DNA from: Haliotis cracherodii
Taxonomy: Eukaryota
Length of the DNA: 64,000 nt
NCBI RefSeq assembly: GCF_022045235.1
Contig: NW_027266264.1
Coordinates: 80,538,001 to 80,602,000, forward strand
Direction: 5' to 3'
Shown in pieces: positions 13,701-62,736 of this stretch. A program made the position numbers and the translations under genes. The notes under the pieces were generated by a model. The model was not told the origin of the DNA, made no database searches, and saw nothing but the letters and a program-made list of their open reading frames with translations. Positions within the stretch are counted from its first letter, which is position 1. Each line of letters starts with the position of its first letter.

Positions 13701-13773
13701 ATGGTGTCGGCGGTTCTTGGCTTGCTGTTGGGATGCCTGGCAATGTCCAGTGCACAAGTGCAAGATGAAGATT
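13701..13773 (+). CDS. Gene B exon 1: signal peptide of a secreted 2xCBM14 protein (152 aa)
   Basis: Kozak-like accATGg; MVSAVLGLLLGCLAMSSAQVQDED; donor GTAAGT at 13774, phase 1; near-identical copy at 23891. Confidence 0.85.
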
Positions 13774-13782
13774 GTAAGTAGA

Positions 13783-13783
<1 letters not shown>

Positions 13784-13852
<69 letters not shown>
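13784..13852. repeat. (GT)n microsatellite at the start of gene B intron 1
   Basis: Perfect GT run beginning 10 bp after the donor. Confidence 0.95.
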
Positions 13853-13853
<1 letters not shown>

Positions 13854-15227
13854 GACTGACTCCGTGCCGATCAATCCTTGTTTTATGCCTTTACTGCCGA
13901 GCCTTAGGCAGGGTAACAATAAGTACCATTTTTGTGTATGCCCGACCGGCCACTCAGCATTGTAGCATTAGCGGTTGTTGTGATGGAAGATTTGTCGGAG
14001 AAGACCTATCACGGCAACATTCACTACTCAGAGCGCTGGGTATACCAAGTGGGGTGCCTGTGAGTCAGTGTCCTTCTGTTCAGCACGAAGAGCACTATCA
14101 CCTGTTACCACACAGTTTGTAAGAAAATACGTGGGTATATTTGGACAATAAAGGCAGTCGCAGCGCTAACACCACGAGCTGGAACAAGGCCCACAATACA
14201 ACCGCAGCGAGAGATAAGCGAGGGCACAGTCGCTTAAGTGTATACTCCTTGTGTCGAACCCGTTTGTGTCGAACCCGCTTGTGTCGTGCACCGTGGGACT
14301 TCCGGGTAAGAATAGGTCCATATCAACCTATGCTTTTCGGACAAGGCGACTAAATGAGTTGGGTGGTCAGTCTCTGTGCATGGGTTGATAGTGAGTTGAC
14401 GGCGCGGATCGTTGTTTGATCAAAGGTTTAACATTCAAGGCCTCAGCAAATCCTTCAAAAGGTTCTGGTAGGACATTATCACATTTGACGCATCAGTGAC
14501 AAAAAAAGATGTCACAAACATTCCCTCTTTTGACTTGTACCATATGTTCCCGGTTCCAGGTGAACAATTAACTTGCCTTTGCATGTGTTTGTGACGGGTG
14601 CCATCGGTGGGGCAGGATACCCTCACCTTTTCATGAACACCTGGCATCATGACTATTTGGTAGTGATTCATAATCATTTGCTCATGATATAGTCGGAATC
14701 GTACAATCGACTCTGGTAGATTTGTTATGAATATGGAAAGGGATTTGTTGCTTTTATTATCATGATATCAATCACTGGTTGCCTGGCCTAGTTTCGATTA
14801 TTTACAGGCCCCGCCATATTGTCAGAATATTGCTGAGTTTGGCATATGGGTCCTGACTGTAATTGGTACGTGTCGCAATGAAGGAAACGCTTTCATTGTA
14901 CATGGGTTGGCATTGTCGGACTAAATATACGCGAATGTCTTGAGAATTCCCATTGCAACAGAAGGCGTCAACAGAACAGCAGGGACCGTGTTGTTTGAAC
15001 CAGACTCGACCTCGATAGTCCCACATGTTGACACCTCCTTCATGTAGCCTACCTGCCATGATCTCGCCATTGACGTATGGAATGATACCGAAAATGGAGG
15101 TTGTCATGATTGACAGTGTAGGACCCATTTCGATGTCTGTACATTTATACCGACCTGACTGTGGTGGCACCGACGTTTCAGACTTTATGTGTGTACTAGA
15201 TTATATAACTGCTTCACTGTCTTTCAG

Positions 15228-15431
15228 ACGCGGTCCTATGTCAGAATAACTTCAACGATGAGTGGAAGTACGCGGCCCCAGGCTCGGGATGCAAGAGGTT
15301 CATCAGTTGCTATGGTCAGGATTACCACGGATTGCTTCAGTGTCCCGAGACGACTCTCTTCAATGAAAACACCCAGGAGTGTGAATACCCATTAGATTTC
15401 AACTGTCAGGTAGCCCTCAACGAAAACCCAG
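15228..15431 (+). CDS. Gene B exon 2: CBM14-like domain 1
   Basis: Acceptor ctttcAG, donor GTAACG. YAVLCQNNFNDEWKYAAPGSGCKRFISCYGQDYHGLLQCPETTLFNENTQECEYPLDFNCQVALNENP, Cys spacing 16-5-10-12-7. Confidence 0.88.
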
Positions 15432-15947
15432 GTAACGAAACATACATGATGCATATGATATTAATTATTTCGTAGCAATAGTGAAATAGCGTTGTCATCT
15501 CAGACGAGAACGTTAATATAATCTGATTGATTGTTTTGTGTATTCAACTAAGCATTGCCTAGCTTATCATTTATCATGGTTATAATTTACAGTTCAGATT
15601 GACAATGTACTTCCGTTTTGTGAACAGAAGGAATTCTGAGACGTGACTTTCTTTATTCCCCGAATGCACAAGATGCTTCAAGGGACCGTGACTGTCTTTT
15701 CAAATGGCTGGTTATGTGCAACGTTGGCGGGTTAAATAATCTTTTAAGTCATATAGTCTATATCAGTTATTTCAGTTACTAGTATTTATAAACTTAGTTG
15801 AACCCAGTTTCCGATAATAACCGTTGAATGTTTGAAGATGATCAACAGCGGATACGGGGTACGTTCCCGAAGCAAGAGAGTCAACTGACTTTGAAAGTTC
15901 AATTTTCTTCTTGCCGAACTAGGCTGGAATTATGGAGTTATATCTTG

Positions 15948-16113
15948 AGTAAGTGAGTGAGTATGGTTTTACGCCGCTTTTAGCAATATCCCAGCAATAT
16001 CACGGCGGGGGGCACCAGAAATGGGCTTCACACATTGTACCCATGTCGGGAATCGAACCCGGGTCTTCGGCGTGACAAGCAAACGCTTTAACCACTAGGC
16101 TACCCGACCGCCC
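15948..16113 (-). mobile_element. SINE family S2 (tRNA-Asp-like head), gene B intron 2
   Basis: Minus-strand head TAGCCTAGTGGTTAAAGCG..GTCACGCCGAAGACCCGGGTTCGATTCCC; TSD GAGTTATATCTTG (15935-15947/16114-16126). Confidence 0.85.
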
Positions 16114-17003
16114 GAGTTATATCTTGGCTGGCCAAACGAGTCTATTCACAGTCCAATCAAAATCGCGTTAGGAATTTGACATCCGGTTCGTTAACTGCCG
16201 GGCAGATTTCGGTCGATTGCAGAGTTTGTAATGCATGTGTGCCGTCTACTCGGCGTCAACAGATATTTCGCAAATCCAAAATCCAAAACGATTGAGCCCA
16301 GAAATTCCAGCATAGTTTGGCAAGGGTGGAAACTGGGCTTTTACAGTCAGCTGACTCTTTCCTCGGGAAGATGGTCACTGGTTTGCCATGAATCCGAAAC
16401 CGGACCGGAAATACTGTGGCTTTTCCACGGTCCATAACAATACACTAAACAGCTCATCCAACCCTCACTCACTCAGTAGCTCATCAACCCCTCACTCACC
16501 CTAAAGGATAAATGTCAACAGGAAGGGACAATCGTGAATCGAGAAAGGAATCAATATCTTGCTATTTTCTTTTTGATATTATACATCAAGAAATACCTAT
16601 TGAGCATATAGTATATATTGTTAGGATGACAGTCTAGTGGGGATGTTGACAGGATTTCCTTCAGGCGGTTTGTTACTACGTGACTTAAGCAAAATTTCAC
16701 AAATACGGAATAAACTTAAGATTTTCGAATGTTATGCCTCCCGTTAAGCCTGATAACTAATGTCAGTAGCCTTTAACTTATCAATAATAATATCAAAATA
16801 TGACATTTTTTAAATTTTTTCTTTCTCTATTTAATGAAATCACATAAGTAAGTTTGACATATTTCTATTAATATCGACTACTGTGAGGAAACGTCTGATT
16901 GATATTGCTTCAGGGACATAGGCGTATGATTCGAAGATGGTTACGGTTCTAAGGTGATTTCTGTTGAACGCTGTATTGTACTTACGTATGTGTTTGCTTC
17001 CAG

Positions 17004-17185
17004 ATTGTCTGACCGGCGTGGATTCCTACAATTGCTCAGTTTTCACGTACTGCCATCTTAACACCCAGTACAACTTCAGCTGCAACCAAGACCTCTACTA
17101 CTCTCAGAGCAAACTCACCTGTGTGTACGCTGAGGATCTGACAGAGGATGACAGACTCAAATGCAACCTCCGCAACGGACGATAG
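17004..17185 (+). CDS. Gene B exon 3: CBM14-like domain 2 and stop
   Basis: Acceptor tttgcttccAG. CLTGVDSYNCSVFTYCHLNTQYNFSCNQDLYYSQSKLTCVYAEDLTEDDRLKCNLRNGR*; AATAAA at 17220-17225. Confidence 0.87.
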
Positions 17186-17519: not shown

Positions 17520-17688
17520 NNNNNNNNNNNNNNNNNNNNNNNNNNNNNNNNNNNNNNNNNNNNNNNNNNNNNNNNNNNNNNNNNNNNNNNNNNNNNNNNN
17601 NNNNNNNNNNNNNNNNNNNNNNNNNNNNNNNNNNNNNNNNNNNNNNNNNNNNNNNNNNNNNNNNNNNNNNNNNNNNNNNNNNNNNNNN
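17520..17688. other. Assembly gap (others at 24020-24185, 27500-27665, 50978-51285, 56859-57012)
   Basis: Runs of N. Confidence 0.99.
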
Positions 17689-17769
17689 CCCGTCCTCGTG
17701 TTATGCCCTCTCCATCCTATCTCCACAGAATATCCTTTGTCGGGCCTACGGTACCGTTACTATCTATAT

Positions 17770-23890: not shown

Positions 23891-23963
23891 ATGGTGTCAG
23901 CGGTTCTTGGCTTGCTGTTGGGATGCCTGGCAATGTCCAGTGCACAAGTGCCAGAAGAAGATT
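23891..23963 (+). CDS. Gene C exon 1: signal peptide (paralog of B; 148 aa protein)
   Basis: MVSAVLGLLLGCLAMSSAQVPEED; donor GTAAGT at 23964. Confidence 0.85.
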
Positions 23964-24238
23964 GTAAGTAGAATTGAACTGAACTTGTCAGGAGGTAAAG
24001 TGGGTTGTACTTCGCTTCANNNNNNNNNNNNNNNNNNNNNNNNNNNNNNNNNNNNNNNNNNNNNNNNNNNNNNNNNNNNNNNNNNNNNNNNNNNNNNNNN
24101 NNNNNNNNNNNNNNNNNNNNNNNNNNNNNNNNNNNNNNNNNNNNNNNNNNNNNNNNNNNNNNNNNNNNNNNNNNNNNNNNNNNNNGGTGGAACTGTCCCG
24201 TCAATATTCACTTATGGCACTTAGTATACACAGTGCCA

Positions 24239-25894: not shown

Positions 25895-26098
25895 ACGCGG
25901 TCCTATGTCAGGATAACTACAACGGTGACTGGAAGTACGTGGCCCCAGGCTCGGGATGCAAGAGGTTCATCAATTGTGGTGGTCAGGATTACCACGGATT
26001 GCTTCAGTGCCCCGAGACGACTCTCTTCAATGAAAACGCCCAGGATTGTGTATACGCAGCGGATTCCAATTGTCAGGAACCCTTCAACGAAAACCCAG
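25895..26098 (+). CDS. Gene C exon 2: CBM14-like domain 1
   Basis: Acceptor gtcttttAG, donor GTAACG; same 204-nt length as B exon 2. YAVLCQDNYNGDWKYVAPGSGCKRFINCGGQDYHGLLQCPETTLFNENAQDCVYAADSNCQEPFNENP. Confidence 0.88.
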
Positions 26099-27121: not shown

Positions 27122-27291
27122 ACTGTGTGACCGGCGTGGATCCCTACAACTGCTCAGCCTTCACATACTGCCATCTTAACACCCAGTACAACTTCAGCTG
27201 CAACCAAGACCTCTACTACTCTCAGAGCAAACTCATCTGTGTGTACGCTGATGATCTGACGGAGGACGACAAATACCTGTGCGGCTTCTAG
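27122..27291 (+). CDS. Gene C exon 3: CBM14-like domain 2 and stop
   Basis: Acceptor tttgcttccAG. CVTGVDPYNCSAFTYCHLNTQYNFSCNQDLYYSQSKLICVYADDLTEDDKYLCGF*; AATAAA at 27368-27373. Confidence 0.87.
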
Positions 27292-28193
27292 ACACACCCA
27301 CCCTGCCCATCCCCCGGGGTCAAAGACCCCCATGATTCAATATAAACAATGTATTCTCTGAATTCCAAATAAAGCTCATCAGACAATATGTTTGTGTCTA
27401 TACTTTCAAACGTAGAGCATTTACAAAACTTTATATACTGGTAAATATTGTCTTGAGTGAGTGAGTGGGTTTATGAGCGAGTGAGTGAGTGAGTGAGTGN
27501 NNNNNNNNNNNNNNNNNNNNNNNNNNNNNNNNNNNNNNNNNNNNNNNNNNNNNNNNNNNNNNNNNNNNNNNNNNNNNNNNNNNNNNNNNNNNNNNNNNNN
27601 NNNNNNNNNNNNNNNNNNNNNNNNNNNNNNNNNNNNNNNNNNNNNNNNNNNNNNNNNNNNNNNNNCCTGCAACTTCTTGGTGTGTAGTCCTTCACGGTAC
27701 CACCTGTCCAGGTGTCATATGTGTAAGTGCCTGTGAATCTGATTTGTACATCTAATATCAATATTTATCATTTAAGTAAAGCATTTATCCATGACATAAG
27801 CTTATGACATAAAAACATGTATGTCATACCCCAATGACATAAGTATGCAAATTAGATATGCAAATTAGATAACCGGAAGTGGGACTTTTTTCGCCGGTGC
27901 ACGTAAGTAGGTGTTTACAAACATGGATACATTTGATGTTCGAGACATTATTTCAATTATTCTGCAAAAGTCTGTTCAAGTATTTTGTTTAAAATAATCC
28001 GAGGAACTTTTTTTCTCAGCGAAGGAATATGCCATAAAGGAGTTAAGAGGTTGTTTATTTTGGTTTACACGGCTATGGAAAACATTTATCACTACGCACG
28101 ATCTATACGTAAGATTTCGACAAGTTGCTGATGTTAATGTTTAATGCAATTATTCCTTAATTGGGAAGTAAAAATGTGAGAATGATAAATATA

Positions 28194-30285: not shown

Positions 30286-30352
30286 ATGTTGACGTTCTCT
30301 AGTATCGGTATTGCTCTTCTGGGACTTTTCTTCACTGTAGACGGACAAACAG
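30286..30352 (+). CDS. Gene D exon 1: signal peptide of a secreted 2xCBM14 protein (150 aa)
   Basis: MLTFSSIGIALLGLFFTVDGQT; donor GTAAGT at 30353, phase 1; TATA box about 105 bp upstream; homologous exon in E, F and G. Confidence 0.85.
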
Positions 30353-30909
30353 GTAAGTGTTTCTTCACCTGGACTTATGTAAACTGTCAGCGTAACATCA
30401 GCCTGGTGACGTAGCCTTAACGCCACACCGACGTCAGTGTTAAACGGTTGTAGATAGAGATGCGCTAGTTTGTTGAACAGACTCGTTATCTTAACGTGTT
30501 GAACCAAGGCATCAAAACAGACTTCCTTTGTTCGGTGTCGCGTAAAAGATAACAGTCAATGTGAACGTTAGCATGATTGAGAGATCCTGGTTAACACTAT
30601 ACTTCGACGTGGGTAAAACTTGACGATCAGTTATTGATATTTAACTTAACTTTATATTATCACTAATTGATAATGAATCTATAACGACACGCCATATTAG
30701 CAGTTAATGATACTGCATCTATAATTATATATCATATTAGTAGTTATTGATACTGCATCTTTAATTATATATCATGTAAGCAGTAATTGATACTGCATCT
30801 GCAATTAAGTACCATATTATCAATAGTTGACACTCCATCTTTGAATTAAACACAATATTATCGGTTGTTGATACTGAAATAGTGACGTTATAAAGGTTTG
30901 TTCTTATGC

Positions 30910-31310
30910 AATGTTGTTCCGTCACAATAGTTTCTTCAGAGGCCGTCATGCAAAATTGTTCAGTCAGAATAGTTTCTTCAGAGATCATCATACTAAATGG
31001 TTCAGTCACAATAGTTTCTTCAGAGGCCGTAGTTTCTTCAGAGGCCGTCCTACAAAATTGTTCAGTCACAATAGTTTCTTCAGAGACCGTCCAACAAAAT
31101 TGTTTAGTCACAATAGTTTCTTCAGAGACCGTAATACTAAATTGTTCAGTCACAATAGTTTCTTCAGAGACCGTAATACTAAATTGTTCAGTCACAATAG
31201 TTTCTTCAGAAACCATCATACAAATTTGTTCAGTCACAATATTTTGTTCAGAGACCGTCATACTAAATTTTCAGTCACAATAGTTTCTTCAGAGGCCGTC
31301 ATACTGAATT
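30910..31310. repeat. 42-bp minisatellite, gene D intron 1
   Basis: AATTGTTCAGTCACAATAGTTTCTTCAGAGACCGTCATACTA. Confidence 0.85.
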
Positions 31311-31544
31311 ATAGTTAATTTAGGTTGAGCCGTAATACTTTCTTTAGGGTCAGTCCTAAGTATTGGTTAGATAGCGGGGCGCCGAGGACTCTAGGTTATA
31401 CCCCATGGTCCAAATGTTCTAACCTATTTAAATCATGGCCAACATTCAAAGTACCTTGGCACCTTAACTATTTAACAGCTTTGTTTTGTTCACCTTATTT
31501 CAAAATATATTCAAGAGCTCTAAACTAGGAAAACTGTTTAAGTA

Positions 31545-32380
31545 GAGTGAGCCCTCATGATTGTGTGGAGTCAACCCTAATGGTTATGTAGAGTCAGGCA
31601 GAATGATTCTGTAGAGTCAGCCCTAATGGTTGTGTGGAGTCAACCCTAATGGTTGTGTAGAGTCAGCCAGAATGATTCTGTAGAGTCAGCCCTAATGGTT
31701 GTGTGGAGTCAACTCTAATGGTTGTGTAGAGTCAGGCAGAATGATTCTGTAGAGTCAGTCCTAATGGTTGTGTAGAGTCAGGCAGAGTGATTCTGTAGAG
31801 TCAGTCCTAATGGTTGTGTAGAGTCAGCCAGAGTGATTCTGTAGAGTCAGCCCTAATGGTTGTGTGGAGTCAACCTTAATGGTTGTGTAGAGTCAGGCAG
31901 AATGATTCTGTAGAGTCAATCCTAATGGTTGTGTAGAGTCAGCCAGAGTGATTCTGTAGAGTCAGCCCTAATGGTTGTGTGGAGTCAACCTTAATGGTTG
32001 TGTAGAGTCAGGCAGAATGATTCTGTAGAGTCAATCCTAATGGTTGTGTAGAGTCAGCCAGAGTGATTCTGTAGAGTCAGCCCTAATGGTTGTGTGGAGT
32101 CAACCTTAATGGTTGTGTAGAGTCAGGCAGAATGATTCTTTAGAGTCAGTCCTAATGGTTGTGTGGAGTCAACCCTAATGGTTGTGTAGAGTCAGGCAGA
32201 ATGAATATGTAGAGTTAGCCCTAATGGTTGTGTAGAGTCAGCCAGAGTGATTTTGTAGAGTCAGTCCCCATGGTTATGTAGAGTCAGTTAGAATGACTCT
32301 GTAGATTCAAGCCACATGGTTGTGTAGAGTCAGTCAGAATGTTTCTTTAAAGTCACTCGTAATGGTTGTGTAGAGTCAGT
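31545..32380. repeat. Minisatellite of about 23-24 bp, gene D intron 1 (short paralog at 40230-40460 in E)
   Basis: AATGGTTGTGTAGAGTCAGTCCT variants. Confidence 0.85.
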
Positions 32381-32456
32381 CATAGATGAGGGTAAGTCAT
32401 CAGTGACTTCTTCACTTGTAAGCAACAGCTGCTGTATTTGATCGTGTTTGTTGCAG

Positions 32457-32663
32457 TGGCACCAGATCCCCGGTGTGATGCGTTCCGGGATGGCATAGGG
32501 AACATCATGGTGGAAGGCATGGATTGCAGATACTACCTCTCGTGCTGGAACTTCATCATCGATCACGAACCCATGCACTGTGCTGGCGGGACGATCTTCA
32601 ACCCAGACACTGGCATGTGTGATGCGGAGGAATGCAACGAAGGAAACACTCAATCTCAATACG
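32457..32663 (+). CDS. Gene D exon 2: CBM14-like domain 1
   Basis: Acceptor tttgttgcAG, donor GTTAGT. VAPDPRCDAFRDGIGNIMVEGMDCRYYLSCWNFIIDHEPMHCAGGTIFNPDTGMCDAEECNEGNTQSQY, Cys spacing 16-5-11-12-4. Confidence 0.88.
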
Positions 32664-33562: not shown

Positions 33563-33741
33563 TGTGTCAAGAGGGTGCTCTACAGGGTGACTGTTCCCGC
33601 TACAACTTGTGTTTCAACACTCCCAATGTCACCTTCCAATGTGGCGAGCAAACCTACTACCACAACGAAATGCTCGTGTGCGTAAATCCCAGCGAATACC
33701 CGGACTTGCCAGAAGAACAGGGATGTGCCTACAATCCCTAG
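33563..33741 (+). CDS. Gene D exon 3: CBM14-like domain 2 and stop
   Basis: Acceptor ttttgaacAG. CQEGALQGDCSRYNLCFNTPNVTFQCGEQTYYHNEMLVCVNPSEYPDLPEEQGCAYNP*; AATAAA at 33968-33973. This frame is absent from the ORF track. Confidence 0.87.
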
Positions 33742-39262: not shown

Positions 39263-39358
39263 AGGTCTCACAGCATTTCGGCAGTTCTGCTTTTGGAGTA
39301 TTCACATCTACACGTCAAACCGATTCGTCACCTTTTTAAACAACAGAGTTTATACAAG

Positions 39359-39425
39359 ATGTTGAAATTCTCTGGTATCGGTATTGCTCTTCTGGGACTT
39401 GTCCTCGCTATTGACGGACAAAGAG
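39359..39425 (+). CDS. Gene E exon 1: signal peptide (152 aa protein)
   Basis: MLKFSGIGIALLGLVLAIDGQR; donor GTAAGT at 39426. Confidence 0.85.
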
Positions 39426-40517: not shown

Positions 40518-40724
40518 TGGCACCGGATCCCCGGTGTGATGTGTTCCGGGATGGCACAGGGAACATCATGGTGGACGGCATGGGGTGTAAATACTACCTC
40601 TCGTGCTGGAACTTCATCATCGCTTACGAACCCATGCCCTGTGCTGGCGGCTCCATCTTCAATCCAGACACTGGCATGTGTGATGCGGTGGAATGCTTCG
40701 ATAGAAGCGTTCTGTCTCAATATG
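40518..40724 (+). CDS. Gene E exon 2: CBM14-like domain 1
   Basis: Acceptor gttgcAG, donor GTTAGT; 207 nt as in D. VAPDPRCDVFRDGTGNIMVDGMGCKYYLSCWNFIIAYEPMPCAGGSIFNPDTGMCDAVECFDRSVLSQY. Confidence 0.88.
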
Positions 40725-41246: not shown

Positions 41247-41431
41247 ACTGTCAACCGGGTTCTCTGGCGGAAGATTGTACCCGCTTCAACATCTGTTTCA
41301 ACACGTTCCATATCTCATACACTTTCCAATGTGGCGAGGGAACCTACTACCACAACGAACTACTCGTGTGCGTCAACCCCAAAGAGTACCCTGGTGTGCC
41401 ACGGAACCAGGGATGCGTCTACAACATCTAG
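41247..41431 (+). CDS. Gene E exon 3: CBM14-like domain 2 and stop
   Basis: Acceptor ttttgaacAG. CQPGSLAEDCTRFNICFNTFHISYTFQCGEGTYYHNELLVCVNPKEYPGVPRNQGCVYNI*. Confidence 0.87.
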
Positions 41432-42150
41432 TAACCGCTGCCACGACAACTGCAGCACCTACATCTACAACTCCTAGTAACCGCAGCCACGACTGAAGCA
41501 CCTACATCTACAACCCCTAGTAACCGCTGCCACGACAACTGCAGCAACTACATCTACAACCCCTAGTAACCGCAGCCCCGACAACTGCAGCAACTACATC
41601 TACAACCCCTAGTAACCGCTGCCACGACAACTGCAGCAACTACATCTACAACCCTAGTAACCGCAGCCCCGACAACTGCAGCAACTACATCTACAACCCC
41701 TAGTAACCGCAGCCACGATGACTGCAGCACCTACATCTACAACCCTAGTAACCGCAGCCGCGACAACTGCAGCACCTACATCTACAACCCCTAGTAACCG
41801 CAGCCGCGACAACTGCAGCACCTACATCTACAACCCCTAGTAACCGCAGCCACGACAACTGCAGCACCTACATCTACAACCCTAGTAACTGCAGCCGCGA
41901 CAACTGCAGCACCTACATCTACAACCCCTAGTAACCACAGCCACGACAACTGCAGCACCTACATCTACAACCCTAGTAACCGCAGCCGCGACAACTGCAG
42001 CAACTACATCTACAACCCCTAGTAACCGCAGCCACGATGACTGCAGCACCTACATCTACAACCCCTAGTAACCACAGCCACGACAACTGCAGCAACTACA
42101 TCTACAACAACTGCAGCAACTACATCTACAACAACTGCAGCACCTGCATC
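41418..42150 (+). repeat. 45/46-bp minisatellite in the gene E 3' UTR, overlapping the stop codon
   Basis: CTACATCTACAACCCCTAGTAACCGCAGCCACGACAACTGCAGCAC, about 15 units. Confidence 0.9.
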
Positions 42151-43747
42151 TACTCTGCTAGTAACTATCGTGTTGCCGATGACCAGTGTTTATGAGGACG
42201 ATCATTCAAGGTTGGGGTAGATATAGTATTGCATGTATTACTTATTGAAACATAACAATAACGCTTCATAAACGCATTAAAATGATGTTACAAATAAACA
42301 ATAAGATTAAAAGATTAATTATTTATTTACTATTTTGTCTGTCTTTTCATCCAAAATAGTTTTTCAATTTCCAACCATGCCTTCTGTTGTCTTGAATGTT
42401 GTAACCTTTATCATACAACTTTTGAGACGAAAGACGCTATTTGTAATCTTGGTAGAAAGAGCATGTTCCATTGTAACTCAAAGGTTGTAAAATGTAGACA
42501 TCAAAGGCTGGAGCTGCTGGAATATTGCTCGACATATTGGAAAGATGAAGTCACCTCTCTTGTCATACAGTGTTGTAGATGATAATTGTAGATCTAAGTA
42601 TGAATCAGATGTGTCAGTTTCACTTGTCTCATATTTCTAGCTCAGGTGGGTCAATGAGTGGAGGGGAATTGTATATTTGATAATTATTGAGCACATCAGT
42701 TTGAGGTATACCTGAAGCTGAAGTTAAACTTCTTGACCACATTCCCTTGTTTCCATTTTGCTAATCTGTCAAAAGGTTCTGACTCTTATGCACAATCAAA
42801 AAGCGACAAAAACATTTCCATACTAGTCGGGGTATGAGCATCTGTATTGTGTGTCACAGAATCTAAATTGTGTATTAACATCCACCAACAGCCTTCATAA
42901 ACAAACTCATTAGAATCTTCTAACCAGCGACATTTCCATCAGTGAACATCGAAAACTGAACTTTTATATCCATTTTGACATATATAATGTACTAAAAACA
43001 ACTACTGCTGTCGAACTGCTGAATTCATTCTGAATATATAGAGTGAGTGAATATTGTTTTACGCTGTTTTTAGACATTTCCCAGCAATGACACGACGGAA
43101 GACATAGAAAAGGTCTTCACACAATTTGCACTAGTTTGGAATCGAACCCGGATTTACTGTGTGTGGAGCAGACGCATTGTCTATCACACCGCATTTAATA
43201 TAACTTGACAAACATTAAACATAAAAAGAGAGTGCTTCTGTTGTTAGTTAATTTAATGAAAACAAGCTTTTGTAGGCATTAGCATCACAGCATAGAAATA
43301 TGTATCTGTTTAAAAATATGGCTATTTTGCTAGAAATGGTCGCTGGTGTTTTGTTATTAATGAACTAGTATTACTTTTCTTCACCCCGTTGAAACCTGTA
43401 TTCCTGATACCGATAGAGGTCACATACGTTGTAATGAGAACAGGTGGTCTTCTAATGCATGGTTGTGTCGCCATGTGTCCAGTCCAGCGATACCGTCACA
43501 CAAAGCCACACGTAAGACTTGCGATGTCGCGAGGCGGAAAGTCTCTGCTAGTCCTGCACCATGACTGTGGAATATATTTATTTTATGGAAAATAATAATC
43601 TAGAAACTCATACAAAAGCAAGTCTAGCCAGCTCTAGCTAGCAAATCAGCATAGGGAGATTTTTTTAGAGTCAAGAAGGATATTGTGTAATATAAGATTT
43701 CATAGACTAAATGTTAGTCTAAGTCTCCGCTTGTTCCAGAGGTTCGG

Positions 43748-47026: not shown

Positions 47027-47093
47027 ATGTTGAAATTCTCTGGTATCGGTATTGCTCTTCTGGGACTTGTCCTCGCTATTGACGGACAGATGG
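47027..47093 (+). CDS. Gene F exon 1: signal peptide (154 aa protein)
   Basis: MLKFSGIGIALLGLVLAIDGQM; donor GTAAGT at 47094. Confidence 0.85.
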
Positions 47094-50040: not shown

Positions 50041-50298
50041 CCAGTCGTATATAAATCCTTCAGAGCCAGTCGTATATAGTTTCTTCGGAGCAATTCGTAT
50101 TCAGTTTCTTCCGAGCGAGCCGTATATAGTTTCTTCGGAGCAATTCGTATAGTTTCTTCAGAGCCAATCGTATATAGTATCTTCAGAAACAGGCCTGTAT
50201 AGTATCGTTAGAGCCAGTCGCATATTCTTTCTGTAGAGGCCGCCAGAGAGAGTGAGTGGAGAACACTATCCTGTACTATGCATCGTGTTTACTTTCAG

Positions 50299-50502
50299 GG
50301 GTTTCGGATCCCCGTTGCGATGAGATGCCTGACGGCAAAGGGAACGTAATGGCCAACGGCAAGTCTTGCAAAGAGTTCCTCCAGTGCTGGGACTACCTCA
50401 TCTATGGTCCGATGCCCTGCGCTGGGGGCACCATGTTCAACTCAACAACCGGCGATTGTGATGCAACGGAATGCATCGAAGGCAGATCAGGAACTCCGGA
50501 CG
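50299..50502 (+). CDS. Gene F exon 2: CBM14-like domain 1
   Basis: Acceptor tactttcAG; donor GTGCGT placed by phase and homology. VSDPRCDEMPDGKGNVMANGKSCKEFLQCWDYLIYGPMPCAGGTMFNSTTGDCDATECIEGRSGTPD. Confidence 0.85.
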
Positions 50503-50575
50503 GTGCGTTCACAAGCACAACTACAATTTCTAACTTTAACAGCTACGTTTACTATCGTATTACGACTACTGTACC

Positions 50576-50576
<1 letters not shown>

Positions 50577-50619
<43 letters not shown>

Positions 50620-51449
50620 TGGTTGGTTGGTTTGTCTTTTAACGCCGCACTCAGCAATAATTCCGCTATATGCCGGCGGTCTGTAAATAATCGAGTCTGG
50701 ACCAGACAATCCAGTGATTGATATCATGAGCATCGTTCCACGCCATTGGGATACGATTTTATGCATCAACCAAGTCAGCGAGCCTGACCACCCGATCCCG
50801 TTAGTCGCCTCTTACGACAGGCATAGACGCCTTCTACGGCAAGGATGGGTTGCTGAAGACCTATTCTACCCCAGATCTTCACGGGCCACTACTACTACTA
50901 CCACCACCACAAATACTTCTACTACTACTGCTGCTACAACCACTACCACTACCTGCAACTCCACTACTACTACATTTNNNNNNNNNNNNNNNNNNNNNNN
51001 NNNNNNNNNNNNNNNNNNNNNNNNNNNNNNNNNNNNNNNNNNNNNNNNNNNNNNNNNNNNNNNNNNNNNNNNNNNNNNNNNNNNNNNNNNNNNNNNNNNN
51101 NNNNNNNNNNNNNNNNNNNNNNNNNNNNNNNNNNNNNNNNNNNNNNNNNNNNNNNNNNNNNNNNNNNNNNNNNNNNNNNNNNNNNNNNNNNNNNNNNNNN
51201 NNNNNNNNNNNNNNNNNNNNNNNNNNNNNNNNNNNNNNNNNNNNNNNNNNNNNNNNNNNNNNNNNNNNNNNNNNNNNNNNNNNNNTACCTCCATTACTAC
51301 TACTACTACTACTACTACCTCCACTACTACTACTACTACTGCTGCTGCTTCTGCTACTACTACCACTACCTCCCTTACTACTATTACTACCACATTTAAT
51401 ACTACTAGTACTACTACTACCACTACCTCCAGTACTACTACTACAGCTG

Positions 51450-51480
<31 letters not shown>

Positions 51481-51791: not shown

Positions 51792-51985
51792 GGTGTGCTT
51801 CGACTGGTTCTCTACCGGAGGACTGCAGCCAATTCATCACCTGTGCCAACGGTTTGGAGTACCAGTACCAATGCGGCGAGGGAACCTACTACAGCAACGA
51901 TCTGCTCGTGTGTGTCCACCCCAAAGAGTATCCTGACATTCCAGAAAAACAGGGATGTGAATACATGGCCCAACAACCTCAGTAA
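51792..51985 (+). CDS. Gene F exon 3: CBM14-like domain 2 and stop
   Basis: Acceptor ctttttccAG. CASTGSLPEDCSQFITCANGLEYQYQCGEGTYYSNDLLVCVHPKEYPDIPEKQGCEYMAQQPQ*; AATAAA at 52140-52145. Confidence 0.87.
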
Positions 51986-54040: not shown

Positions 54041-57000
54041 CCCAATCTGTTGACTGACATTTGGAGATTACCCGGTTTGTTTTTTTTGCCAAAAATACAG
54101 CCCTTCTGACAATCTGGGTAATGCAGAAGGCTGCAGAGTTTGTGAGTCTTCACAATTTCCTTTCCGTCAACGCGCATGTTGACGGGGAATTAGCTCTTGG
54201 GGGGAAAGAAGGACAAAATCGACATAACTGTCCAGGAACGCTTTATGCACAACATGTAAACAATAAACAACAATTCCACAATGAGCGGAATACCTGCACT
54301 GAAAACACAAACACAGCAATGAGCGGACCTTCCAGCTTAGGCGTACAAGAGGTGAGCGGAGCTCCAGCTCACCTCAGGGCGTTTCCTACGAGCGGCACAT
54401 CCTGCTCGAGGTCGTCCCTATGCCAGCACTCGGAATACCAAGCCTGACTAACACCGTAGTAACTGTGTAATGGTAACGCATATATAGTAATGAACAACAA
54501 TGGACAGACAATGTGACAACGACGTTGCTTTGGACACTGGACATGTTGGCGTGATTAACCAACACAGTTCATGGGATGATCAATTAGGGCAATAAATGCC
54601 ATACTATAAAAAGCAGTAGTTAAAGGGAAGTGATATGGTAGTCCAGGCTGACTGACAGTCAAAATACAATGAAATGTTGGTGAGGATTAACAACGGGGAT
54701 TAGTGTCTTATAAATAATGACAATTAAGTTACGGAGACATATACATGTCATGGCTACAGGGTAATGAGCCTTTGCAATCAAATGTACTTCAGACAATGGT
54801 AGTCGTAAATCAGTCGCTATGACATTTCTATGGCAAGGTCGTGCAGTCCTATAAAAAATGTTGTATAAAGCTACAAAAGTTTAAAACGGTTGCGTTTTTT
54901 GCACCACACCAGTTAAAGGAAATGTGACTAAAATCGTTCAAATGCATTTGTATTAATATTATTAATACTCATTATCTCCTGTGCGTTTCTTTTTTTCTTT
55001 TTCTTTTTTGTGGCGGGGAGGGGGGGGGGGGGGGGGGGGAGTGTATTACCTCGCTAAAGAGAATTTAGAACTGATTCTTGGTAGAATGTGAATTTGAAAC
55101 CTCGCGTTGCGCGTTCGGTTCCGATTTCAATTTAGCACTGTTATATCTACAGGTAACGTAGCTCTACACTGAAAACACAGTGTATGTCCTAATTCTACGT
55201 TACATAAATTGGGAAATTACTCGATTCTAATAGGTCAGTCAGAAGTTATCAAATCCCAAGAAAATCCCTTTGATTGAAAAAGCCAAATATGTATAACCAT
55301 ACTTTCTTCAGTCATTGTGAGTAGGCATTAGAAAATGATGATATATGTTCATAATAAATGCAAAATGCAAATTTGCAGTTACCACGATTTTCAAAGAACG
55401 TGTGGCAGTACATTTTGTGCGGAAAACACGGTAGAAATATACTGAGAGAATGCATTTCAAGTTTTGGGGAAAATAGAGAGCTTGAAATGTGGCGCCTTTC
55501 TTAACAAACGACTTACCCGTAAAGATCCGGGTTAGAATAGGTCTTTCAGCAACCCATGCTTGTCGTAAGAGGCGACTAACGGGGTCGGGTGGTCATGCTC
55601 GCTTTGTATTGAATGTTTCATGAATATTCAAAATGCTCAAAACCCTATTATTACCCCGGTCAGTGGATCAGTGTGCTCTCACTAATCATTCTCAGCTCCC
55701 AGGGGAGTATACAACCCACGCTGCCTGTGAGGCGCTAGAAGGTTAACAGCCACAAGCCTTCTCATCCTATCGGGTACTCATTCACTGCTGGGTGAACAGA
55801 GGCACTTTTCGAACAAATCACTTGCGCAAGGAGGCACCATATGTTTTATATGGGCATAAAATAAAGTAGTTTTATTTGATTTCATCCTTGCTACATCTGT
55901 CCGATCGTAGATTGTATTCAACCTCATTTCTCAATAATCCAATTGAAAAAGCTACTAAATTAAATGTTTAATATGACATCAAAAACATTCTTTTCTAAAA
56001 GTCCATATCCAAAATGCAGTGGGTAGTTACAGCGCACATGTCTTCGTTAATTAATACATGATAAAACAGTCTACCATAACACTGAAAAATGTTCTGATTG
56101 GTCAAAATATCAATAAAGACAGGTTTCTAATTCTATAAGATACCCCATCATAGGCATGCCTTTTCACACAAAATTTTGCAAATGACTACATCAATCTATC
56201 GATAGCCTATATATATATATCGATACATATAACAATGTACCAATTAGACCTGAATACGTTCGATATCGGAACATTATCAGATGCTTTTGTCAACCTTTCA
56301 CACACATCTATGTCAAAACACATACTGTTATAAAACACACACTAACACTGGTCCCAGGGTAGACTATATTTTGTGGTTACTGATGGTTGTGATGCGGTTT
56401 GTTGTAACTGACAATATCTTCCTCACAACTTCTCTTCATGGCTGTCTTCAACATTGGCCCGAGGCCACACTTTTTTGCTTGCTTTACAAATTTGTACAGG
56501 AAAATGTCTGTCGTTAGGTGGGGGAAAAAAAGAAATTTGGTTTGGGTTTCTCCTCCACTACAGGGGGAGAGGTGGGGAGGGGTGGGGAGTGGTAGGGAGG
56601 GGCTGGTAGGAAAGTAATTATGGTTTAATGTGGGAGGAAAGCTGCAACACATATGATGCTTTAAGCAAACCTGGAGAATCAAACGCGAATCACTTTGGGC
56701 CCACTACCAGTATCAAATATAAATTATTGAATAAGTTCTCCTGACTGACAACTAACCGTTTATCTACCTGTAACTTGCACTTTATTTTGACTTTCATGAC
56801 CGAGTACAAAAGTGTGGCTTATTTGAAAGAAAGAAGACGAAAGAGGAATTTGTTACCANNNNNNNNNNNNNNNNNNNNNNNNNNNNNNNNNNNNNNNNNN
56901 NNNNNNNNNNNNNNNNNNNNNNNNNNNNNNNNNNNNNNNNNNNNNNNNNNNNNNNNNNNNNNNNNNNNNNNNNNNNNNNNNNNNNNNNNNNNNNNNNNNN

Positions 57001-57500
57001 NNNNNNNNNNNNACCATGTCTCCTCCGCGAATCTCATCCAGCATCCCGGGTCTTCACAAACAGGCTGACTCATACACACAGGGCGAGGTTACATCTGACG
57101 TTTACACTTCCCATCCATTAAACTCTCCACGCTGACCTATTCACGTCTCCACCAATACACTGCATCCAATGTCATTAAGTTAATTTGATATTTATCTCGT
57201 TGTAATCCGCTATACAAAACTAGTTTTTATTCGGTTCAACATTTGCTTCGATTCTCTTGCCGTTCTCGGTGACGTTGCAGAAGAATGTCACCGCGTGTGA
57301 AATGCTTCCACCATATACCTCCTCAGATATCATCCCATCAGCTCGACAAATAGGCTTTACTTCATGCCTTCGAAACGGACATGGATCAAACACGGCAAAA
57401 CCTCGGGTGCATTTCGTTATAACAAAATACAACATACTATGGACAAATAAAAATCCGGGGAACATTTATTGTCATAGTAGGCATTTACTTAAGGGGAGGG

Positions 57501-57529: not shown

Positions 57530-57625
57530 GGGTCTTGCGGCATTTCGACAGTTCTGCTTTTGGAGTTTTCACATACACACGTTAACCGGATTCCTCGTCG
57601 TTATACGCAACAGAATTTATACAAG

Positions 57626-57692
57626 ATGTTGAAGTTCTCTGGCATTGGTATTGCTCTTCTGGGACTTGTCCTCGCTATTGACGGACAGATGG
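57626..57692 (+). CDS. Gene G exon 1: signal peptide (151 aa protein)
   Basis: MLKFSGIGIALLGLVLAIDGQM; donor GTAAGT at 57693. Confidence 0.85.
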
Positions 57693-58017
57693 GTAAGTAG
57701 TTATCCCCCTAGAGTCAGTTATGTAAACTGTCGACGTACATCAGCCTGATGACGTTGCCTTAACGCTACACCGACGTCATTGTTAGTCGGTTGTAGATAG
57801 AGATGAGTTACCATGTTGAACAGACGCTTTGTCTTAACACGTCGACAGAGTCGGCGCTCTGAGTGAAGTGTCGTTCAAGATAACTCTGGAGTCGATTAAT
57901 GTATTGTTTCAGTGTACAGATGTGTAGTTTCACGAGCTCTCTATGTTATCTATGGACAATGGGGTAGCCTTACGGTTACAGCATTCAGTCGCCCTACCGA
58001 AGTCTCACGTGTAAAGA

Positions 58018-58295
58018 GGGGGAACGAGTGGCCCAGTCGTCTAAGGCGCCGCGATTCGCTGTGCAGAGTTGCGTCCCTTGGGCACGCCAGAAACCTATGA
58101 TCGTGGGTTCGAATCCCGGTTTGCCCCGATTATGTTTCTAGGTTTGTCAGCACCATACCCGTGCTCGTGGGTTTCACCGAAGTGGTAAACGTCTGAGACC
58201 TGCATCACTTCGGGCTTTCCTCCAACATTAAGCTGACACGCTGCGATATAACTGGAATACTATTAAAAGCAGCGTTAAACCCAACTCACTCACTT
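58018..58295 (+). mobile_element. SINE S1 in gene G intron 1, nested among older SINE fragments
   Basis: TSD ACGTGTAAAGA (58007-58017/58296-58306). Confidence 0.85.
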
Positions 58296-58559
58296 ACGTG
58301 TAAAGAACCGTCTCTGTGGTCTTGTGGTAGAGCGTCTAAAACGCGCACACACACACACTAACACACTAACACACACACTAATTCACCTCACCTCATGTGT
58401 GAAGATCTTCAGCGATGTCCTCTGCTTTGATATGGCTGTTTTTCCATTAGGCACCACTTAAAGCCCGCTCACTATGTGATATTACAGTAACAGCAAACAT
58501 CTTCCACGTTTACACGTATGGTACCGCTCTGATCTTATTATAGCATTATTAAATCATGT

Positions 58560-58720
58560 GTGAGTGAGTATGGTCTTACGTCACTTCTAGCACATACCAG
58601 CAAAATCACGACAGGGGACACCAGAAATAAGCTTCACAGATTATAAGCGTGTGGGGAATCGAACCTGGGTCTTCAGCGTTACGGGGGAACGCTTTAACCA
58701 TTAGGCTACCCCACCAGCCC
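58560..58720 (-). mobile_element. SINE S2, diverged
   Basis: Homology to S2; further partial copies near 3414-3455, 28635-28760, 43021-43170 and 51500-51617. Confidence 0.7.
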
Positions 58721-58949
58721 ATCGTTCACATGCACTCAAATTGTTAATGAAATATGTAGTTCCATAAAAGAACAATATGTGTGCACGCCTCTTACATCAA
58801 TAATGCGATAGTTAAGATGGAAATAACGTTTGTCAGGAATGTATCTGTTGTATGTGAATTGCATTCAAACTTCCCTGTTCATTTTGATATTTTCATGGAT
58901 ATTTATCTATCTACATGCCGCATTTGAACTAAATATTTTATGCATGATA

Positions 58950-60185
58950 AGAATGTGTACCAGGTACACACGATAATATACTTAGGAGTTACTTGTAGAA
59001 TGTGTGCTGTTATACATTTGCGGATTAACTTGAGTAGAATATGTGCTCCGCAAACACGGTTATATACTTGTAGGGTAACTTTGAGTAGAATGTGTGCCCA
59101 GTACACATGGTTATATACTTGTGAGGTCCCCAGTACACATGGTTATATACTTGTGAGGTAACTTTGAGTAGAATGGGTGCCCAGCACACATGGTTATATA
59201 CTTGTGGAGTAACTTGAGTAGAATGTGTGCCCAGTACACTCGGTTATATGTTTGTGAGTTAACTTGAGTAGAATGTGTGCCCAGTACACATGGTTATATA
59301 CTTGTGAGGTAACTGGAGTAGAACGTGAGGAATGCACACTCGGTTATATACTTGTAGGGTAACTTTGAGTAGAATGTGTGCCCAGTACACATGGTTATAT
59401 ACTTGTAGGGTAACTTGAGTAGATTGTGTGCCCAGTACACATGGTTATATACTTGTAGGGTAACTTTGAGCAGAACGTGTGCCCAGTACACATGGTTATA
59501 TACTTGTAGGGTAACTTGAGTAGATTGTGTGCCCAGTACACATGGTTATATACTTGTAGGGTAACTTTGAGTAGAATGTGTGCCCAGTACACATGGTTAT
59601 ATACTTGTAGGGTAACTTTGAGTAGAATGTGTGCCCAGTACACATGGTTATATACTTGTAGGGTAACTTGAGTAGAATGTGTGCCAATTACACGCTGTTA
59701 TATACTTGTGAGGTAACTTGAGTAGAATGTGTGCACAGCACACTCGGTTATATACTTGTAGGGTAACTTTGAATAGAATGTGTGCCAATTACACGCTGTT
59801 ATATACTTGTGAGGTAACTTGAGTAGAATGTGTGCACAGCACACTCGGTTATATACTTGTAGGGTAACTTTGAATAGAATGTGTGCCAATTACACGCTGT
59901 TATATATACTTGTGAGGTAACTTGAGTAGAATGTGTGCCCAGTACACGCGGTTATATACTTGTAGGGTAGCTTTAGCAGAATGTGTGCCCAGTACATGCG
60001 GTTATATATACTTGTGAGGTAACTTTAGCAGAATGTGTGCCCAGTACACGCGGTTATATATACTTGTGAGGTAACTTTAGCAGAATGTGTGCCCAGTACA
60101 CGCGGTTATATATACTTGTGAGGTAACTTTAGCAGAATGTGTGCCCAGTACACGTGGTTATATATACTTGTGAGGTAACTTTAGA
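58950..60185. repeat. Minisatellite of about 50-51 bp, gene G intron 1 (paralog of the F array)
   Basis: Same unit with array-specific variants. Confidence 0.92.
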
Positions 60186-60499
60186 GGGACAAATCCTCAC
60201 ATCCGAACCTGTCCGCTTGTGATTTTAATAGGATAGAACTGGGCCTACTGTTGATGTTTGTTGCTTAGAATTTTGCTCCCAGTACCTAAATAATCAGTTT
60301 TATAATATACAATATATATTTTAACATGTTGTTTGCAGCATTTCAGGTGTCACCAGTACTCACGCTTGTCTACTAATAATACATCCGACACCAGAGATGT
60401 GCTGGACAAATGAAGTCTTTATCTCACTATTGGGGTGATTTCTGGATTCAGTAAAACATATTTTCGTTTTTCTTCAAATGCTGCCAAACAGGTATTCTC

Positions 60500-61140
60500 A
60501 TGTAGTTTTTTCGGAGCCAGTCGTATATAGTTTCGTCAGATCCATCCGTATATTGGTACTTCAGAGCCAGTCGTATATAATTTCTTCAGGGCCAGTCGTA
60601 TATAGTTTCTTCAGAGCCAGTCGTATAAAGTTTCTTCAGAGCCAGTCGTATATAGTTTCTTCGGAGCCAGTCGTATATAGTTTCTTCAGAGCCAGTCGTA
60701 TATAGTTTCTCCAGATACAGTCGAATATAATTTCTTCTGAGCGAGTCGTATTTACTTCCTTCGGAGCAAGTCGTATAAGTTTCTTCAGAGCCAGTCGTAT
60801 ATAGTTTTTTTCAGAGCCAGTCGTGTATTGTTTCTTCAGAGACTGTTGTATATAGTTTCTCCAGATACAATCAAATACAGTTTCTTCAGAGCCAGTCGTA
60901 TTATATTTCTTCAGAGCCATTCGTATATAGTTTCTTCAGAGACAGTCGCATACAGTTCCTTCGGAGACAGTCTTATTTGCTTCCTTCAGAGACAGTTTCT
61001 TCATAGATAATCGTATAAAGTTCCTTCAGAGTATGTCGTATAGAGTTTCTTCAGAGCCAGCCGTATAGAGTGTCTTCAGATCCAGCTCTATACAGTTTCT
61101 TCAGAGGGAGTGGTATATAGTTGTTTTTTCAGAGACAGTC
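60500..61140. repeat. Degenerate repeat of about 25-27 bp before G exon 2 (shorter paralog at 50040-50240 in F)
   Basis: TAGTTTCTTCAGAGCCAGTCGTATA. Confidence 0.8.
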
Positions 61141-61176
61141 GCACTAAGTGTCTAACCTCTCCTTGTTTACCTTCAG

Positions 61177-61380
61177 GAATACGTGATACCCGGTGTGATA
61201 ATCTGCCGGACGGCACAGGGAACGTGGTGGCCAACGGCAAGGCTTGCAGAGAGTTCCTCCTGTGCTGGAAATACAACATCTACGGCCCTTTGCCCTGCCC
61301 TGGTGACACATTGTTCAACTCAACAAGCGGCAATTGTGATGCAACGCAATGCTTCGATGACAGACAAGGACCTGTGGACG
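61177..61380 (+). CDS. Gene G exon 2: CBM14-like domain 1
   Basis: Acceptor taccttcAG, donor GTGGGT; 204 nt as in F. IRDTRCDNLPDGTGNVVANGKACREFLLCWKYNIYGPLPCPGDTLFNSTSGNCDATQCFDDRQGPVD. Confidence 0.85.
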
Positions 61381-61519
61381 GTGGGTTCTCGAGTACCACT
61401 ACAATTATTAATGTAACAGCTACGTTGACTGCTACTACAACTACTGAACCCTCTACTACGTCTACGACAAGTTCTACCGTTAAAGAATAACTTATAATGA
61501 ATATATCCATGTGATCGTT

Positions 61520-61569
61520 GCTACTTATGCTGCTGCCACTACTACTAATACTACTACTACTACTTCTAC

Positions 61570-61626
<57 letters not shown>

Positions 61627-62042
61627 CTGCACAACTACAACCACTACACTACTCCCTCCACTACTACCATTACCACACCTACACTACTACTAAAACAAGG
61701 ACTGGTCGGCTCGGAGTAAGTATACTGTGTCTGAGTGGGGTATTCATGTTAAACTGCGGCATGGTATCTCAGTGAACTCGCACTATAAATCGGCATCAGT
61801 CCGGACTAGTACAAGCAGCCACAACTACTACTACCATTACCACGCCTACACTACTACTACCACCACTACTACTGCTATATCCACCACTACCTCCACTAGT
61901 ACTACTACTACTACTTCTTCTTCTACTACTACTACTACTACCACTACTACTACAACTACTACTACCACCCCTACGACTACTACTACCACTACTACTACTA
62001 CTACTTCTACTACTTCTACTACTACTACTACTACTACCACTT
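61520..62042. repeat. (ACT)n-rich microsatellite field in gene G intron 2
   Basis: ACT/ACC runs interrupted by an S4 fragment. Confidence 0.85.
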
Positions 62043-62350
62043 GTGCCATAGGAAGCCATCGTGATGGTCCGGATTTGACTAGTTTCATTCAAATTGTGTC
62101 GGTAATTAAACTGGATCAGGTTGTCAGGCTCGGTGTCTTTGTTGTTTGGGTGTCATTGTACCCCGACGGCGCCGGAAACTGCTCAGACTCTTTTATGTAC
62201 GGACTGTTGTCATGTACATTATAGCTGGAATAGTGTTTAAACGAAAACGAAAAACTAAATAAATATGAAGCGTGAAGTATTCCCCCAACATGCCAGAGAT
62301 GTTAAATGTTTTTTCAATGAAGTGATGCGCTCCAACACACAGTCTAAATA

Positions 62351-62525
62351 CAGTAAACAACGGTTAAAACGAATACGCTTAAAAGGAACTGACTGATATA
62401 ATGAACTTAGTTTTTAGTCCCGGCAATTTGTTGTATATATGCTGTATAAATGCTTATAACAAACTACGGTTATAACGAACTAAAATAAGTGGTCCCTTTG
62501 AGTTCGTTATAACCGTAGTTTACTG
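62351..62525. mobile_element. Tc1/pogo-type MITE about 25 bp upstream of the gene G exon 3 acceptor
   Basis: TA|CAGTAAACAACGGTTAAAACGAA / TTCGTTATAACCGTAGTTTACTG|TA; absent in gene F. Confidence 0.75.
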
Positions 62526-62551
62526 TACTGCATTTTGTGTGTTTTTTCAAG

Positions 62552-62736
62552 GGTGTGCCTTCACGGGTGCTCTACCGGAGGACTGCAGCCAATTCATCAC
62601 GTGTGCCAACGGTTTGGAATGGCGGTACCAATGCGGCAAGGGAACCTACTACAGCAACAGGCTGCTCGTGTGCGTTAGCCCCTTAGAGTACCCGGAAATC
62701 CCAACAACACAGGGATGTGCCTACTTTCCATTATAA
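62552..62736 (+). CDS. Gene G exon 3: CBM14-like domain 2 and stop
   Basis: Acceptor ttttttcaAG. CAFTGALPEDCSQFITCANGLEWRYQCGKGTYYSNRLLVCVSPLEYPEIPTTQGCAYFPL*. Confidence 0.86.

Follow-up and report, generated by a model that had tools for sequence, protein, structure and literature searches.

A 64,000-nucleotide stretch of the Haliotis cracherodii genome (contig C1:80538001-80602000, hereafter the window; positions without a contig prefix are counted from its first nucleotide) contains six co-oriented three-exon genes, g1-g6, which span 13701-62736 and encode putatively secreted proteins with two CBM14 (peritrophin-A) domains each. All six are part of a tandem array comprising at least eight predicted two-domain genes, and at least two of the six, g4 and g6, are transcribed. 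We consider it probable, by analogy with other CBM14 proteins, that the products act as bivalent chitin binders. A first-pass annotation made from the sequence alone had described six such genes with phase-1/phase-1 introns and products of 148-154 aa at this place, and our independently built exon models agree with it on start, end and size range.

The gene models start from a six-frame scan for the six-cysteine pattern, which returned six domain pairs on the + strand between 15.2 and 62.7 kb and two further domains near the window start. Ahead of each pair lies a short ATG-started open frame with a hydrophobic leader and a phase-1 GTAAGT-type donor. Acceptors and donors were set by reading frame, polypyrimidine tract and paralogue alignment, the acceptor of g1 exon 3 being placed by aligning g1 with g2. 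In the resulting models (Table 1), all 12 introns are GT-AG and phase 1, exon 1 encodes a putative signal peptide, and exons 2 and 3 encode one six-cysteine domain apiece. The coding sequences are 447-465 nt long and all divisible by 3, none of the splice junctions creates a stop codon, and g1 to g6 encode 152, 148, 150, 152, 154 and 151 aa, respectively. Every domain exon carries exactly six cysteines, and the complete set of 12 domain cysteines and the lack of premature stops reported earlier are found in all six genes. In exon 1, a hydrophobic core is followed by a small-residue site, SSA/Q in g1 and g2 or IDG/Q in g4-g6, as judged by rule of thumb; the mature proteins would be acidic (computed isoelectric point 4.0-4.5), 130-134 aa long and 14.4-15.5 kDa in mass.

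In an exon-by-exon profile search, all 12 domain exons of g1-g6 scored above the PF01607 (CBM_14) gathering cut-off of 22.1 bits (26.7-41.5 bits). Successive cysteines are separated by 16-5-10/11-12-4/7 residues in domain 1 and by 8/9-5-9/11-12-13/14 in domain 2, where the first loop is shorter than in the family consensus. The pattern quoted at first pass, which opens with CX(13-20)C, is therefore only partly appropriate: the six cysteines and the CX5C core are present, but the first spacing of domain 2, at 8-9 residues, lies outside the range. Across 18 aligned proteins of four Haliotis species, Y124 and the full set of 12 cysteines never vary and F69 hardly does, and each domain should form three disulfides. 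Exons were searched singly, whereas the full-length search, the fold prediction and the tree used RefSeq proteins, with g3 left out of all three. The AlphaFold2 model is that of g5, built from the shallow 18-protein alignment, with a mean predicted local distance difference test score (pLDDT) of 63 and ~80 in domain 2. Its meaningful PDB matches by Foldseek are all CBM14 structures, namely the Aplysia protein EHEP, tachycitin, the CBM14 domain of CHIT1, Avr4, Der p 23 and Blo t 12, and it superposes on Avr4, CHIT1 and Der p 23 with a root-mean-square deviation (rmsd) of 1.7-3.9 A over 47-48 residues. Profile scores and predicted fold thus bear out the CBM14 assignment first proposed, and they place the predicted products in the CBM14/peritrophin-A family, beyond mere resemblance.

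Splicing was sought in public sequencing runs. None of those examined is recorded as RNA; run X1, which carries no tissue label, behaves in an RNA-like manner, and we take it to be RNA as a guess. Word depth in X1 is ~5300-7400 across the three g6 exons (57600-62740) and 0 in unique intron bins, the few intronic contigs in the region having a depth of 3-17. In a 246-nt contig, the whole of g6 exon 2 is flanked by 28 nt of exon 1 and 12 nt of exon 3; its exon 1-2 joint lies at 57691/2-61176/7 (GT..AG), and contigs starting at 62551 bear the final 16 nt of g6 exon 2 as a loose end, verified against the window. Another contig, aligned over g6 exon 1, derives from a transcript of g4: positions 39311-39340, in the 5′ flank of g4, match its 5′ loose end exactly, and its 3′ loose end consists of the end of g4 exon 1 followed by the start of g4 exon 2. 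The predicted splicing is thus seen at both introns of g6 and at intron 1 of g4, so that the junctions modelled at first pass have contig-based support from one run in these two genes, to which the transcript evidence is confined. Spliced joints were absent from runs X2, X19 and X22; in X19 and X22 the introns are covered as they would be by DNA, with contigs ~5% different from the window, and X2 gave a few low-depth contigs only.

A maximum-likelihood tree resolves four clades: a g1/g2 type, a g3/g4 type, a g5/g6 type and a downstream type. Orthologue pairs of H. cracherodii and H. rufescens are starred for g2, g4 and g6, and the g5 pair stands at an unresolved fork; the g3/g4 clade includes a duplicate pair private to H. 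asinina, and the g1 clade one private to H. rufescens. Given these orthologue pairs and lineage-specific duplicates, the array is older than the split of these species and still turning over. Ratios of nonsynonymous to synonymous substitution rates (dN/dS, Nei-Gojobori) are 0.49-0.62 between sister paralogues; in exon 2 of g1 and g2 the ratio is 1.10, the 18 nonsynonymous and 4 synonymous changes being what equal rates predict. The birth-and-death mode proposed earlier is consistent with the one-to-one orthologues of g2, g4, g5 and g6 in H. rufescens, with the duplicates and with dN/dS of ~0.5-0.6. The comparisons indicate that the family evolves fast outside its invariant cysteines and has expanded within Haliotis through successive tandem duplications. 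Little distinguishes the leader exons of g4, g5 and g6 from one another, although their domain exons are old paralogues: between g4 and g5, dS is 0.10 in exon 1 vs. 0.72-0.84 in the domain exons, which suggests gene conversion, exon sharing or a shared recent leader. A phmmer search with g5 against 1.84 billion representatives returned 369 matches (E <= 0.001), and full-length relatives of ~150 aa are all from Haliotis among the matches that could be named. The other top matches are giant multi-CBM14 proteins (e.g., of beetles) with 30-38% identity per domain; the 369 also include an Elysia protein of 215 aa along with unnamed sequences from metagenomes. As far as tested, with other vetigastropods thinly sampled, the family appears restricted to Haliotis, in line with the lineage specificity claimed at first pass.

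The expectation that ORF-based annotation would easily miss these genes is not supported. RefSeq proteins identical to our models exist for g1 (XP_071107756.1), g2 (XP_071107766.1), g4 (XP_071080459.1), g5 (XP_071080559.1) and g6 (XP_071080646.1), all of them automatic predictions titled "uncharacterized protein". No RefSeq protein was retrieved for g3 by word-based protein search and cluster look-ups, a search that may have missed it. Protein searches also returned orthologues from H. rufescens, H. rubra and H. asinina; the g2 orthologue in H. rufescens, XP_046359019.2, is titled peritrophin-44-like. Our literature search found no functional study of these predicted proteins and nothing relevant on "peritrophin-44" in abalone. 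In the H. rufescens RefSeq annotation, the g5 and g6 orthologues are merged as isoforms X1-X3 of LOC124136986, which may reflect either ambiguous mapping on the identical leaders or real read-through splicing. The genes are correct, yet finding them is ordinary, since at least five of the six had already been predicted.

Five assembly gaps (runs of N) fall within the array, three intergenic and two intronic, and none touches or abuts an exon (Table 1). Continuity of g2 and g5 across the two intronic gaps is not provable from this assembly; it is indirectly backed by the independent H. rufescens assembly, because the orthologues there have the same length and exon content (g2: P0012, 148 aa; g5: P0010, 154 aa, 92% identical). 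In H. rufescens, g1-type loci number at least four (P0013, P0009, P0014 and P0016), among them a 246-aa model in which exons of two adjacent copies are chained. Because gaps follow both g1 and g2 and H. rufescens has this many g1-type loci, g1/g2-type copies may be collapsed, and their number under-assembled, in the H. cracherodii assembly.

The array extends beyond the six genes to which the first-pass annotation had confined it. We examined 20 kb upstream and 50 kb downstream of the window and found two further two-domain three-exon genes downstream (C1:80615516-80635270), with leader exons at C1:80615516 and C1:80628217 and phase-1 sites; all four of their domain exons pass PF01607, and the first of the two genes has a 147-aa orthologue in H. 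asinina (P0108). Genome searches with g6 and with g1 exon 2 gave strong matches inside the window only and weak ones just downstream. Three-domain CBM14 genes flank the array, two in tandem upstream and one downstream (Table 1). Their exon 1 encodes a signal peptide together with domain 1, later exons encode one domain each, introns are phase 1, products are ~240 aa long, and their best PDB match is EHEP. The seventh CBM14 gene reported ahead of the array does exist; it is the second of the upstream pair, a three-domain gene whose first exon precedes the window start. The locus therefore reads three-domain genes, at least eight predicted two-domain genes and a three-domain gene, with symmetric phase-1 domain exons throughout. 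A PF01607 scan of the genome found at least 589 candidate CBM14 domain exons, many in tandem clusters, and all 150 of the 150 that were scored exceeded the cut-off. One cluster, at C5:2005204-2103517, holds at least nine identically scoring CBM14 matches ~8 kb apart, each with one in-frame TGA, and represents a young tandem array in which the domain is either broken or split by an intron.

In the role that we favour, each of the two domains of the secreted protein would bind one chitin chain, and the protein, small and bivalent, would cross-link or coat a chitin-containing extracellular matrix, with gut lining, radula, shell matrix and chitinous microbes as candidate sites. We propose it because this mode of action has been suggested for the two-domain Anopheles gambiae protein Ag-Aper1 and for squid beak chitin-binding proteins, and chitin-binding squid beak protein 3 is the second-best solved sequence match (37.9 bits). 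Several points weigh against it. The signal peptide is putative, assigned by eye; the confidence of the g5 model is modest; the junction overhangs in X1 (28, 16 and 12 nt) all fall below the 31-nt bridging rule and come from contigs of a single run; and g3 lacks transcript or RefSeq support in the data examined. Chitin binding by members of g1-g6 is itself a prediction, and EHEP and Der p 23 have the CBM14 fold and the hallmark aromatics and bind no chitin (PMC5271319, PMC10619976). Because EHEP is the best solved match, "chitin-binding" should not be assumed for g1-g6. The published shell proteomes of H. asinina and H. laevigata list chitin-binding proteins, none of them tied to the g1-g6 family. 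It is also conceivable that some copies, g3 foremost, are silent or decaying duplicates whose frames are intact from youth and not from function: no g3 protein was retrieved from RefSeq, its leader exon is the most diverged (dN/dS of 1.2 between g3 and g4 in exon 1), and overall dN/dS between g3 and g6 is ~1.0. We think this very unlikely, given that g3 retains its ATG, all four splice sites, its 12 cysteines and both Pfam matches, that the word-based search may have overlooked it, and that the g3-g4 dS of ~0.29 is time enough for a silent copy to have gained a stop or a frameshift.

The closeness to EHEP raises a second role, in which the array and the flanking three-domain genes would be the abalone counterpart of that protein, a digestive counter-defence in a kelp grazer whose products bind brown-algal phlorotannins or other non-chitin gut ligands, and thereby shield glycosidases. 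Abalone feed on brown algae, and among proteins of solved structure EHEP gives the top sequence match to the family profile (E 1.7e-10, both domains), to g5 and to g5 domain 2 alone, as well as the best structural match of the g5 model. This small gastropod protein, secreted and present in digestive fluid, has three CBM14 domains; it precipitates brown-algal phlorotannins and showed neither chitin binding nor antimicrobial activity (PMC5271319, PMC10619976). However, its pocket is formed by three domains set in a triangle, with residues from PAD1, PAD2 and PAD3 (PMC10619976), and the g1-g6 proteins have two domains, 19-26% identity to EHEP and a poor two-domain superposition on 8IN3 and 8IN6 (rmsd 13.6-16 A) that leaves the domain arrangement unmatched. 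The likeness in sequence and fold may reflect common gastropod CBM14 ancestry alone, and we found no abalone phlorotannin-binding protein in the literature; we regard an EHEP-like role as a long shot. If it were true, EHEP, for which its describers reported no homologues outside Aplysia, would be part of a wider gastropod family, and the tandem expansion would track algal chemical defence. Somewhat less improbable, although still unlikely, is that the products are immune effectors and not structural matrix proteins, either tachycitin-like secreted lectins for chitin or related glycans on fungi, parasites and other invaders, or proteins induced by infection. Tachycitin is among the fold matches of the g5 model, immune gene families typically combine tandem expansion with fast evolution, peritrophin-A-domain genes of abalone were reported to be up-regulated in H. 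iris after exposure to haliotid herpesvirus 1 (HaHV-1; reviewed in PMC7558354), and peritrophin-A genes are among the candidate loci under selection in H. rubra (PMC9327721). The last two studies, however, concern the CBM14 class at large and not the g1-g6 loci, dN/dS is below 1 overall among the g1-g6 paralogues, and EHEP, the nearest solved relative, showed no antimicrobial activity (PMC5271319). Bivalent chitin binding remains the role that we prefer.

Table 1. Predicted exons of g1-g6, flanking three-domain genes and assembly gaps (window positions unless prefixed C1)
Feature	Position	Strand	Description
g1 exon 1	13701-13773	+	ATG, putative signal peptide, phase-1 donor
g1 exon 2	15228-15431	+	CBM14 domain 1, PF01607 29.9 bits, Cys spacing 16-5-10-12-7
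g1 exon 3	17004-17185	+	CBM14 domain 2, PF01607 32.7 bits, TAG stop
g2 exon 1	23891-23963	+	putative signal peptide
g2 exon 2	25895-26098	+	CBM14 domain 1, PF01607 30.0 bits
g2 exon 3	27122-27291	+	CBM14 domain 2, PF01607 36.2 bits, stop
g3 exon 1	30286-30352	+	putative signal peptide, most diverged leader
g3 exon 2	32457-32663	+	CBM14 domain 1, PF01607 34.1 bits
g3 exon 3	33563-33741	+	CBM14 domain 2, PF01607 27.5 bits, stop
g4 exon 1	39359-39425	+	putative signal peptide
g4 exon 2	40518-40724	+	CBM14 domain 1, PF01607 29.6 bits
g4 exon 3	41247-41431	+	CBM14 domain 2, PF01607 26.9 bits, stop
g5 exon 1	47027-47093	+	putative signal peptide
g5 exon 2	50299-50502	+	CBM14 domain 1, PF01607 30.0 bits
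g5 exon 3	51792-51985	+	CBM14 domain 2, PF01607 41.5 bits, stop
g6 exon 1	57626-57692	+	putative signal peptide
g6 exon 2	61177-61380	+	CBM14 domain 1, PF01607 26.7 bits
g6 exon 3	62552-62736	+	CBM14 domain 2, PF01607 38.0 bits, stop
First upstream three-domain gene	C1:80527877-80534813
Second upstream three-domain gene	C1:80537244 to window 2393
Second upstream three-domain gene exon 1	C1:80537244-80537553	+	before window start; first domain 18.1 bits, below cut-off
Second upstream three-domain gene exon 2	615-821	+	second CBM14 domain, PF01607 39.1 bits, phase-1 sites
Second upstream three-domain gene exon 3	2185-2393	+	third CBM14 domain, PF01607 51.1 bits, TGA stop
Downstream three-domain gene	C1:80638090-80643255
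Gap	17520-17688		334 nt past g1 stop
Gap	24020-24185		g2 intron 1, 56 nt past donor
Gap	27500-27665		208 nt past g2 stop
Gap	50978-51285		middle of g5 intron 2
Gap	56859-57012		613 nt ahead of g6 ATG

The window is also rich in repeats. Intron 1 of g3, g4, g5 and g6 ends in minisatellites of 23-25 nt that reach the exon 2 acceptor (30906-32381, 40117-40401, 50041-50232 and 60503-61122, respectively). The unit in g3 (30906-31304), g5 and g6 contains TTTCTTCAG, so that each unit resembles a splice acceptor; a distinct unit, GAGTCAGTCCTAATGGTTGTGTA, makes up the array of g4 and the second array of g3 (31542-32381). Further minisatellites at or after the stops of g4 (41418-42153) and g3 (33748-33839) lie in or near the 3′ untranslated region. 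Judged from the consensus alone, the 46-nt g4 unit seems to be a copy of the final exon 3 codons together with the stop; we rejected a coding role for these minisatellites, the g4 period not being a multiple of 3. The exon 2 frames of g5 and g6 stay open beyond the donor (50503-50639 and 61381-61487), and intron 2 contains extended (ACT)n tracts, which translate as poly-Thr in one of the frames. A mucin linker made of the Thr-rich frame past the g6 exon 2 donor or of the intron 2 poly-Thr open reading frame (61727-62224) was likewise rejected: X1 depth is ~20 vs. ~5300 in exon 2, a figure taken just past the donor, as the (ACT)n tracts themselves were skipped in the read comparison, and the g5 microsatellite reads as poly-Tyr in the exon frame. 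Copies of an interspersed repeat, some inverted, at 58019-58294, 61690-61814 and 62450-62527 draw huge depth in every run compared, along with false joints by the hundred. Near the window start, a 490-aa open reading frame (3786-5258) within a repeat region (3583-5258, with units such as IPIYFQHWTENNGLCQCSHIFPT) is a translated tandem DNA repeat, and its Pfam matches to HNH_2 and IgG_binding_B are artefacts with no valid stretch.

The analysis provides a checked annotation of a minimal two-domain CBM14 subfamily, apparently restricted to Haliotis, in an endangered abalone, and a candidate set for chitin-matrix, immune or digestive roles; the locus combines a textbook exon-shuffling architecture with birth-and-death evolution. 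Among known systems, the two-domain build is matched by that of Ag-Aper1, which consists of a signal peptide and two tandem CBM14 domains with little else, in ~150 aa; abalone are not known to have an insect-type peritrophic matrix. The g1-g6 products share this build with the Anopheles gambiae peritrophin (Shen and Jacobs-Lorena 1998, cited in PMC5271319), a proposed bivalent chitin cross-linker, but they are not its orthologues, the insect matches being the giant multi-domain proteins described above. The squid beak protein DgCBP-3 (PDB 7BWE) is likewise a mollusc CBM14 protein, and it is domain 1 that it matches second best among solved structures; it differs in that the solved chain is a single 64-residue domain of a cephalopod beak protein. 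EHEP (Aplysia kurodai, 25 kDa; PDB 8IN3, 8IN4 and 8IN6) resembles the g1-g6 products as a small secreted gastropod protein made of CBM14 domains only, with short linkers, and differs from them in its triangular three-domain pocket and in sequence. In architecture it is closer to the flanking three-domain genes than to g1-g6, a likeness that does not establish orthology. Measured against CBM14/PF01607 as a whole, the g1-g6 domains have the six cysteines, the CX5C core, the conserved aromatic past Cys4 and a matching predicted fold, and depart from it in the Cys1-Cys2 loop of 8-9 residues in domain 2, with otherwise nothing distinctive. We therefore see in the array a real, lineage-specific and uncharacterised addition to a well-known family, of modest interest, and not a new kind of system.

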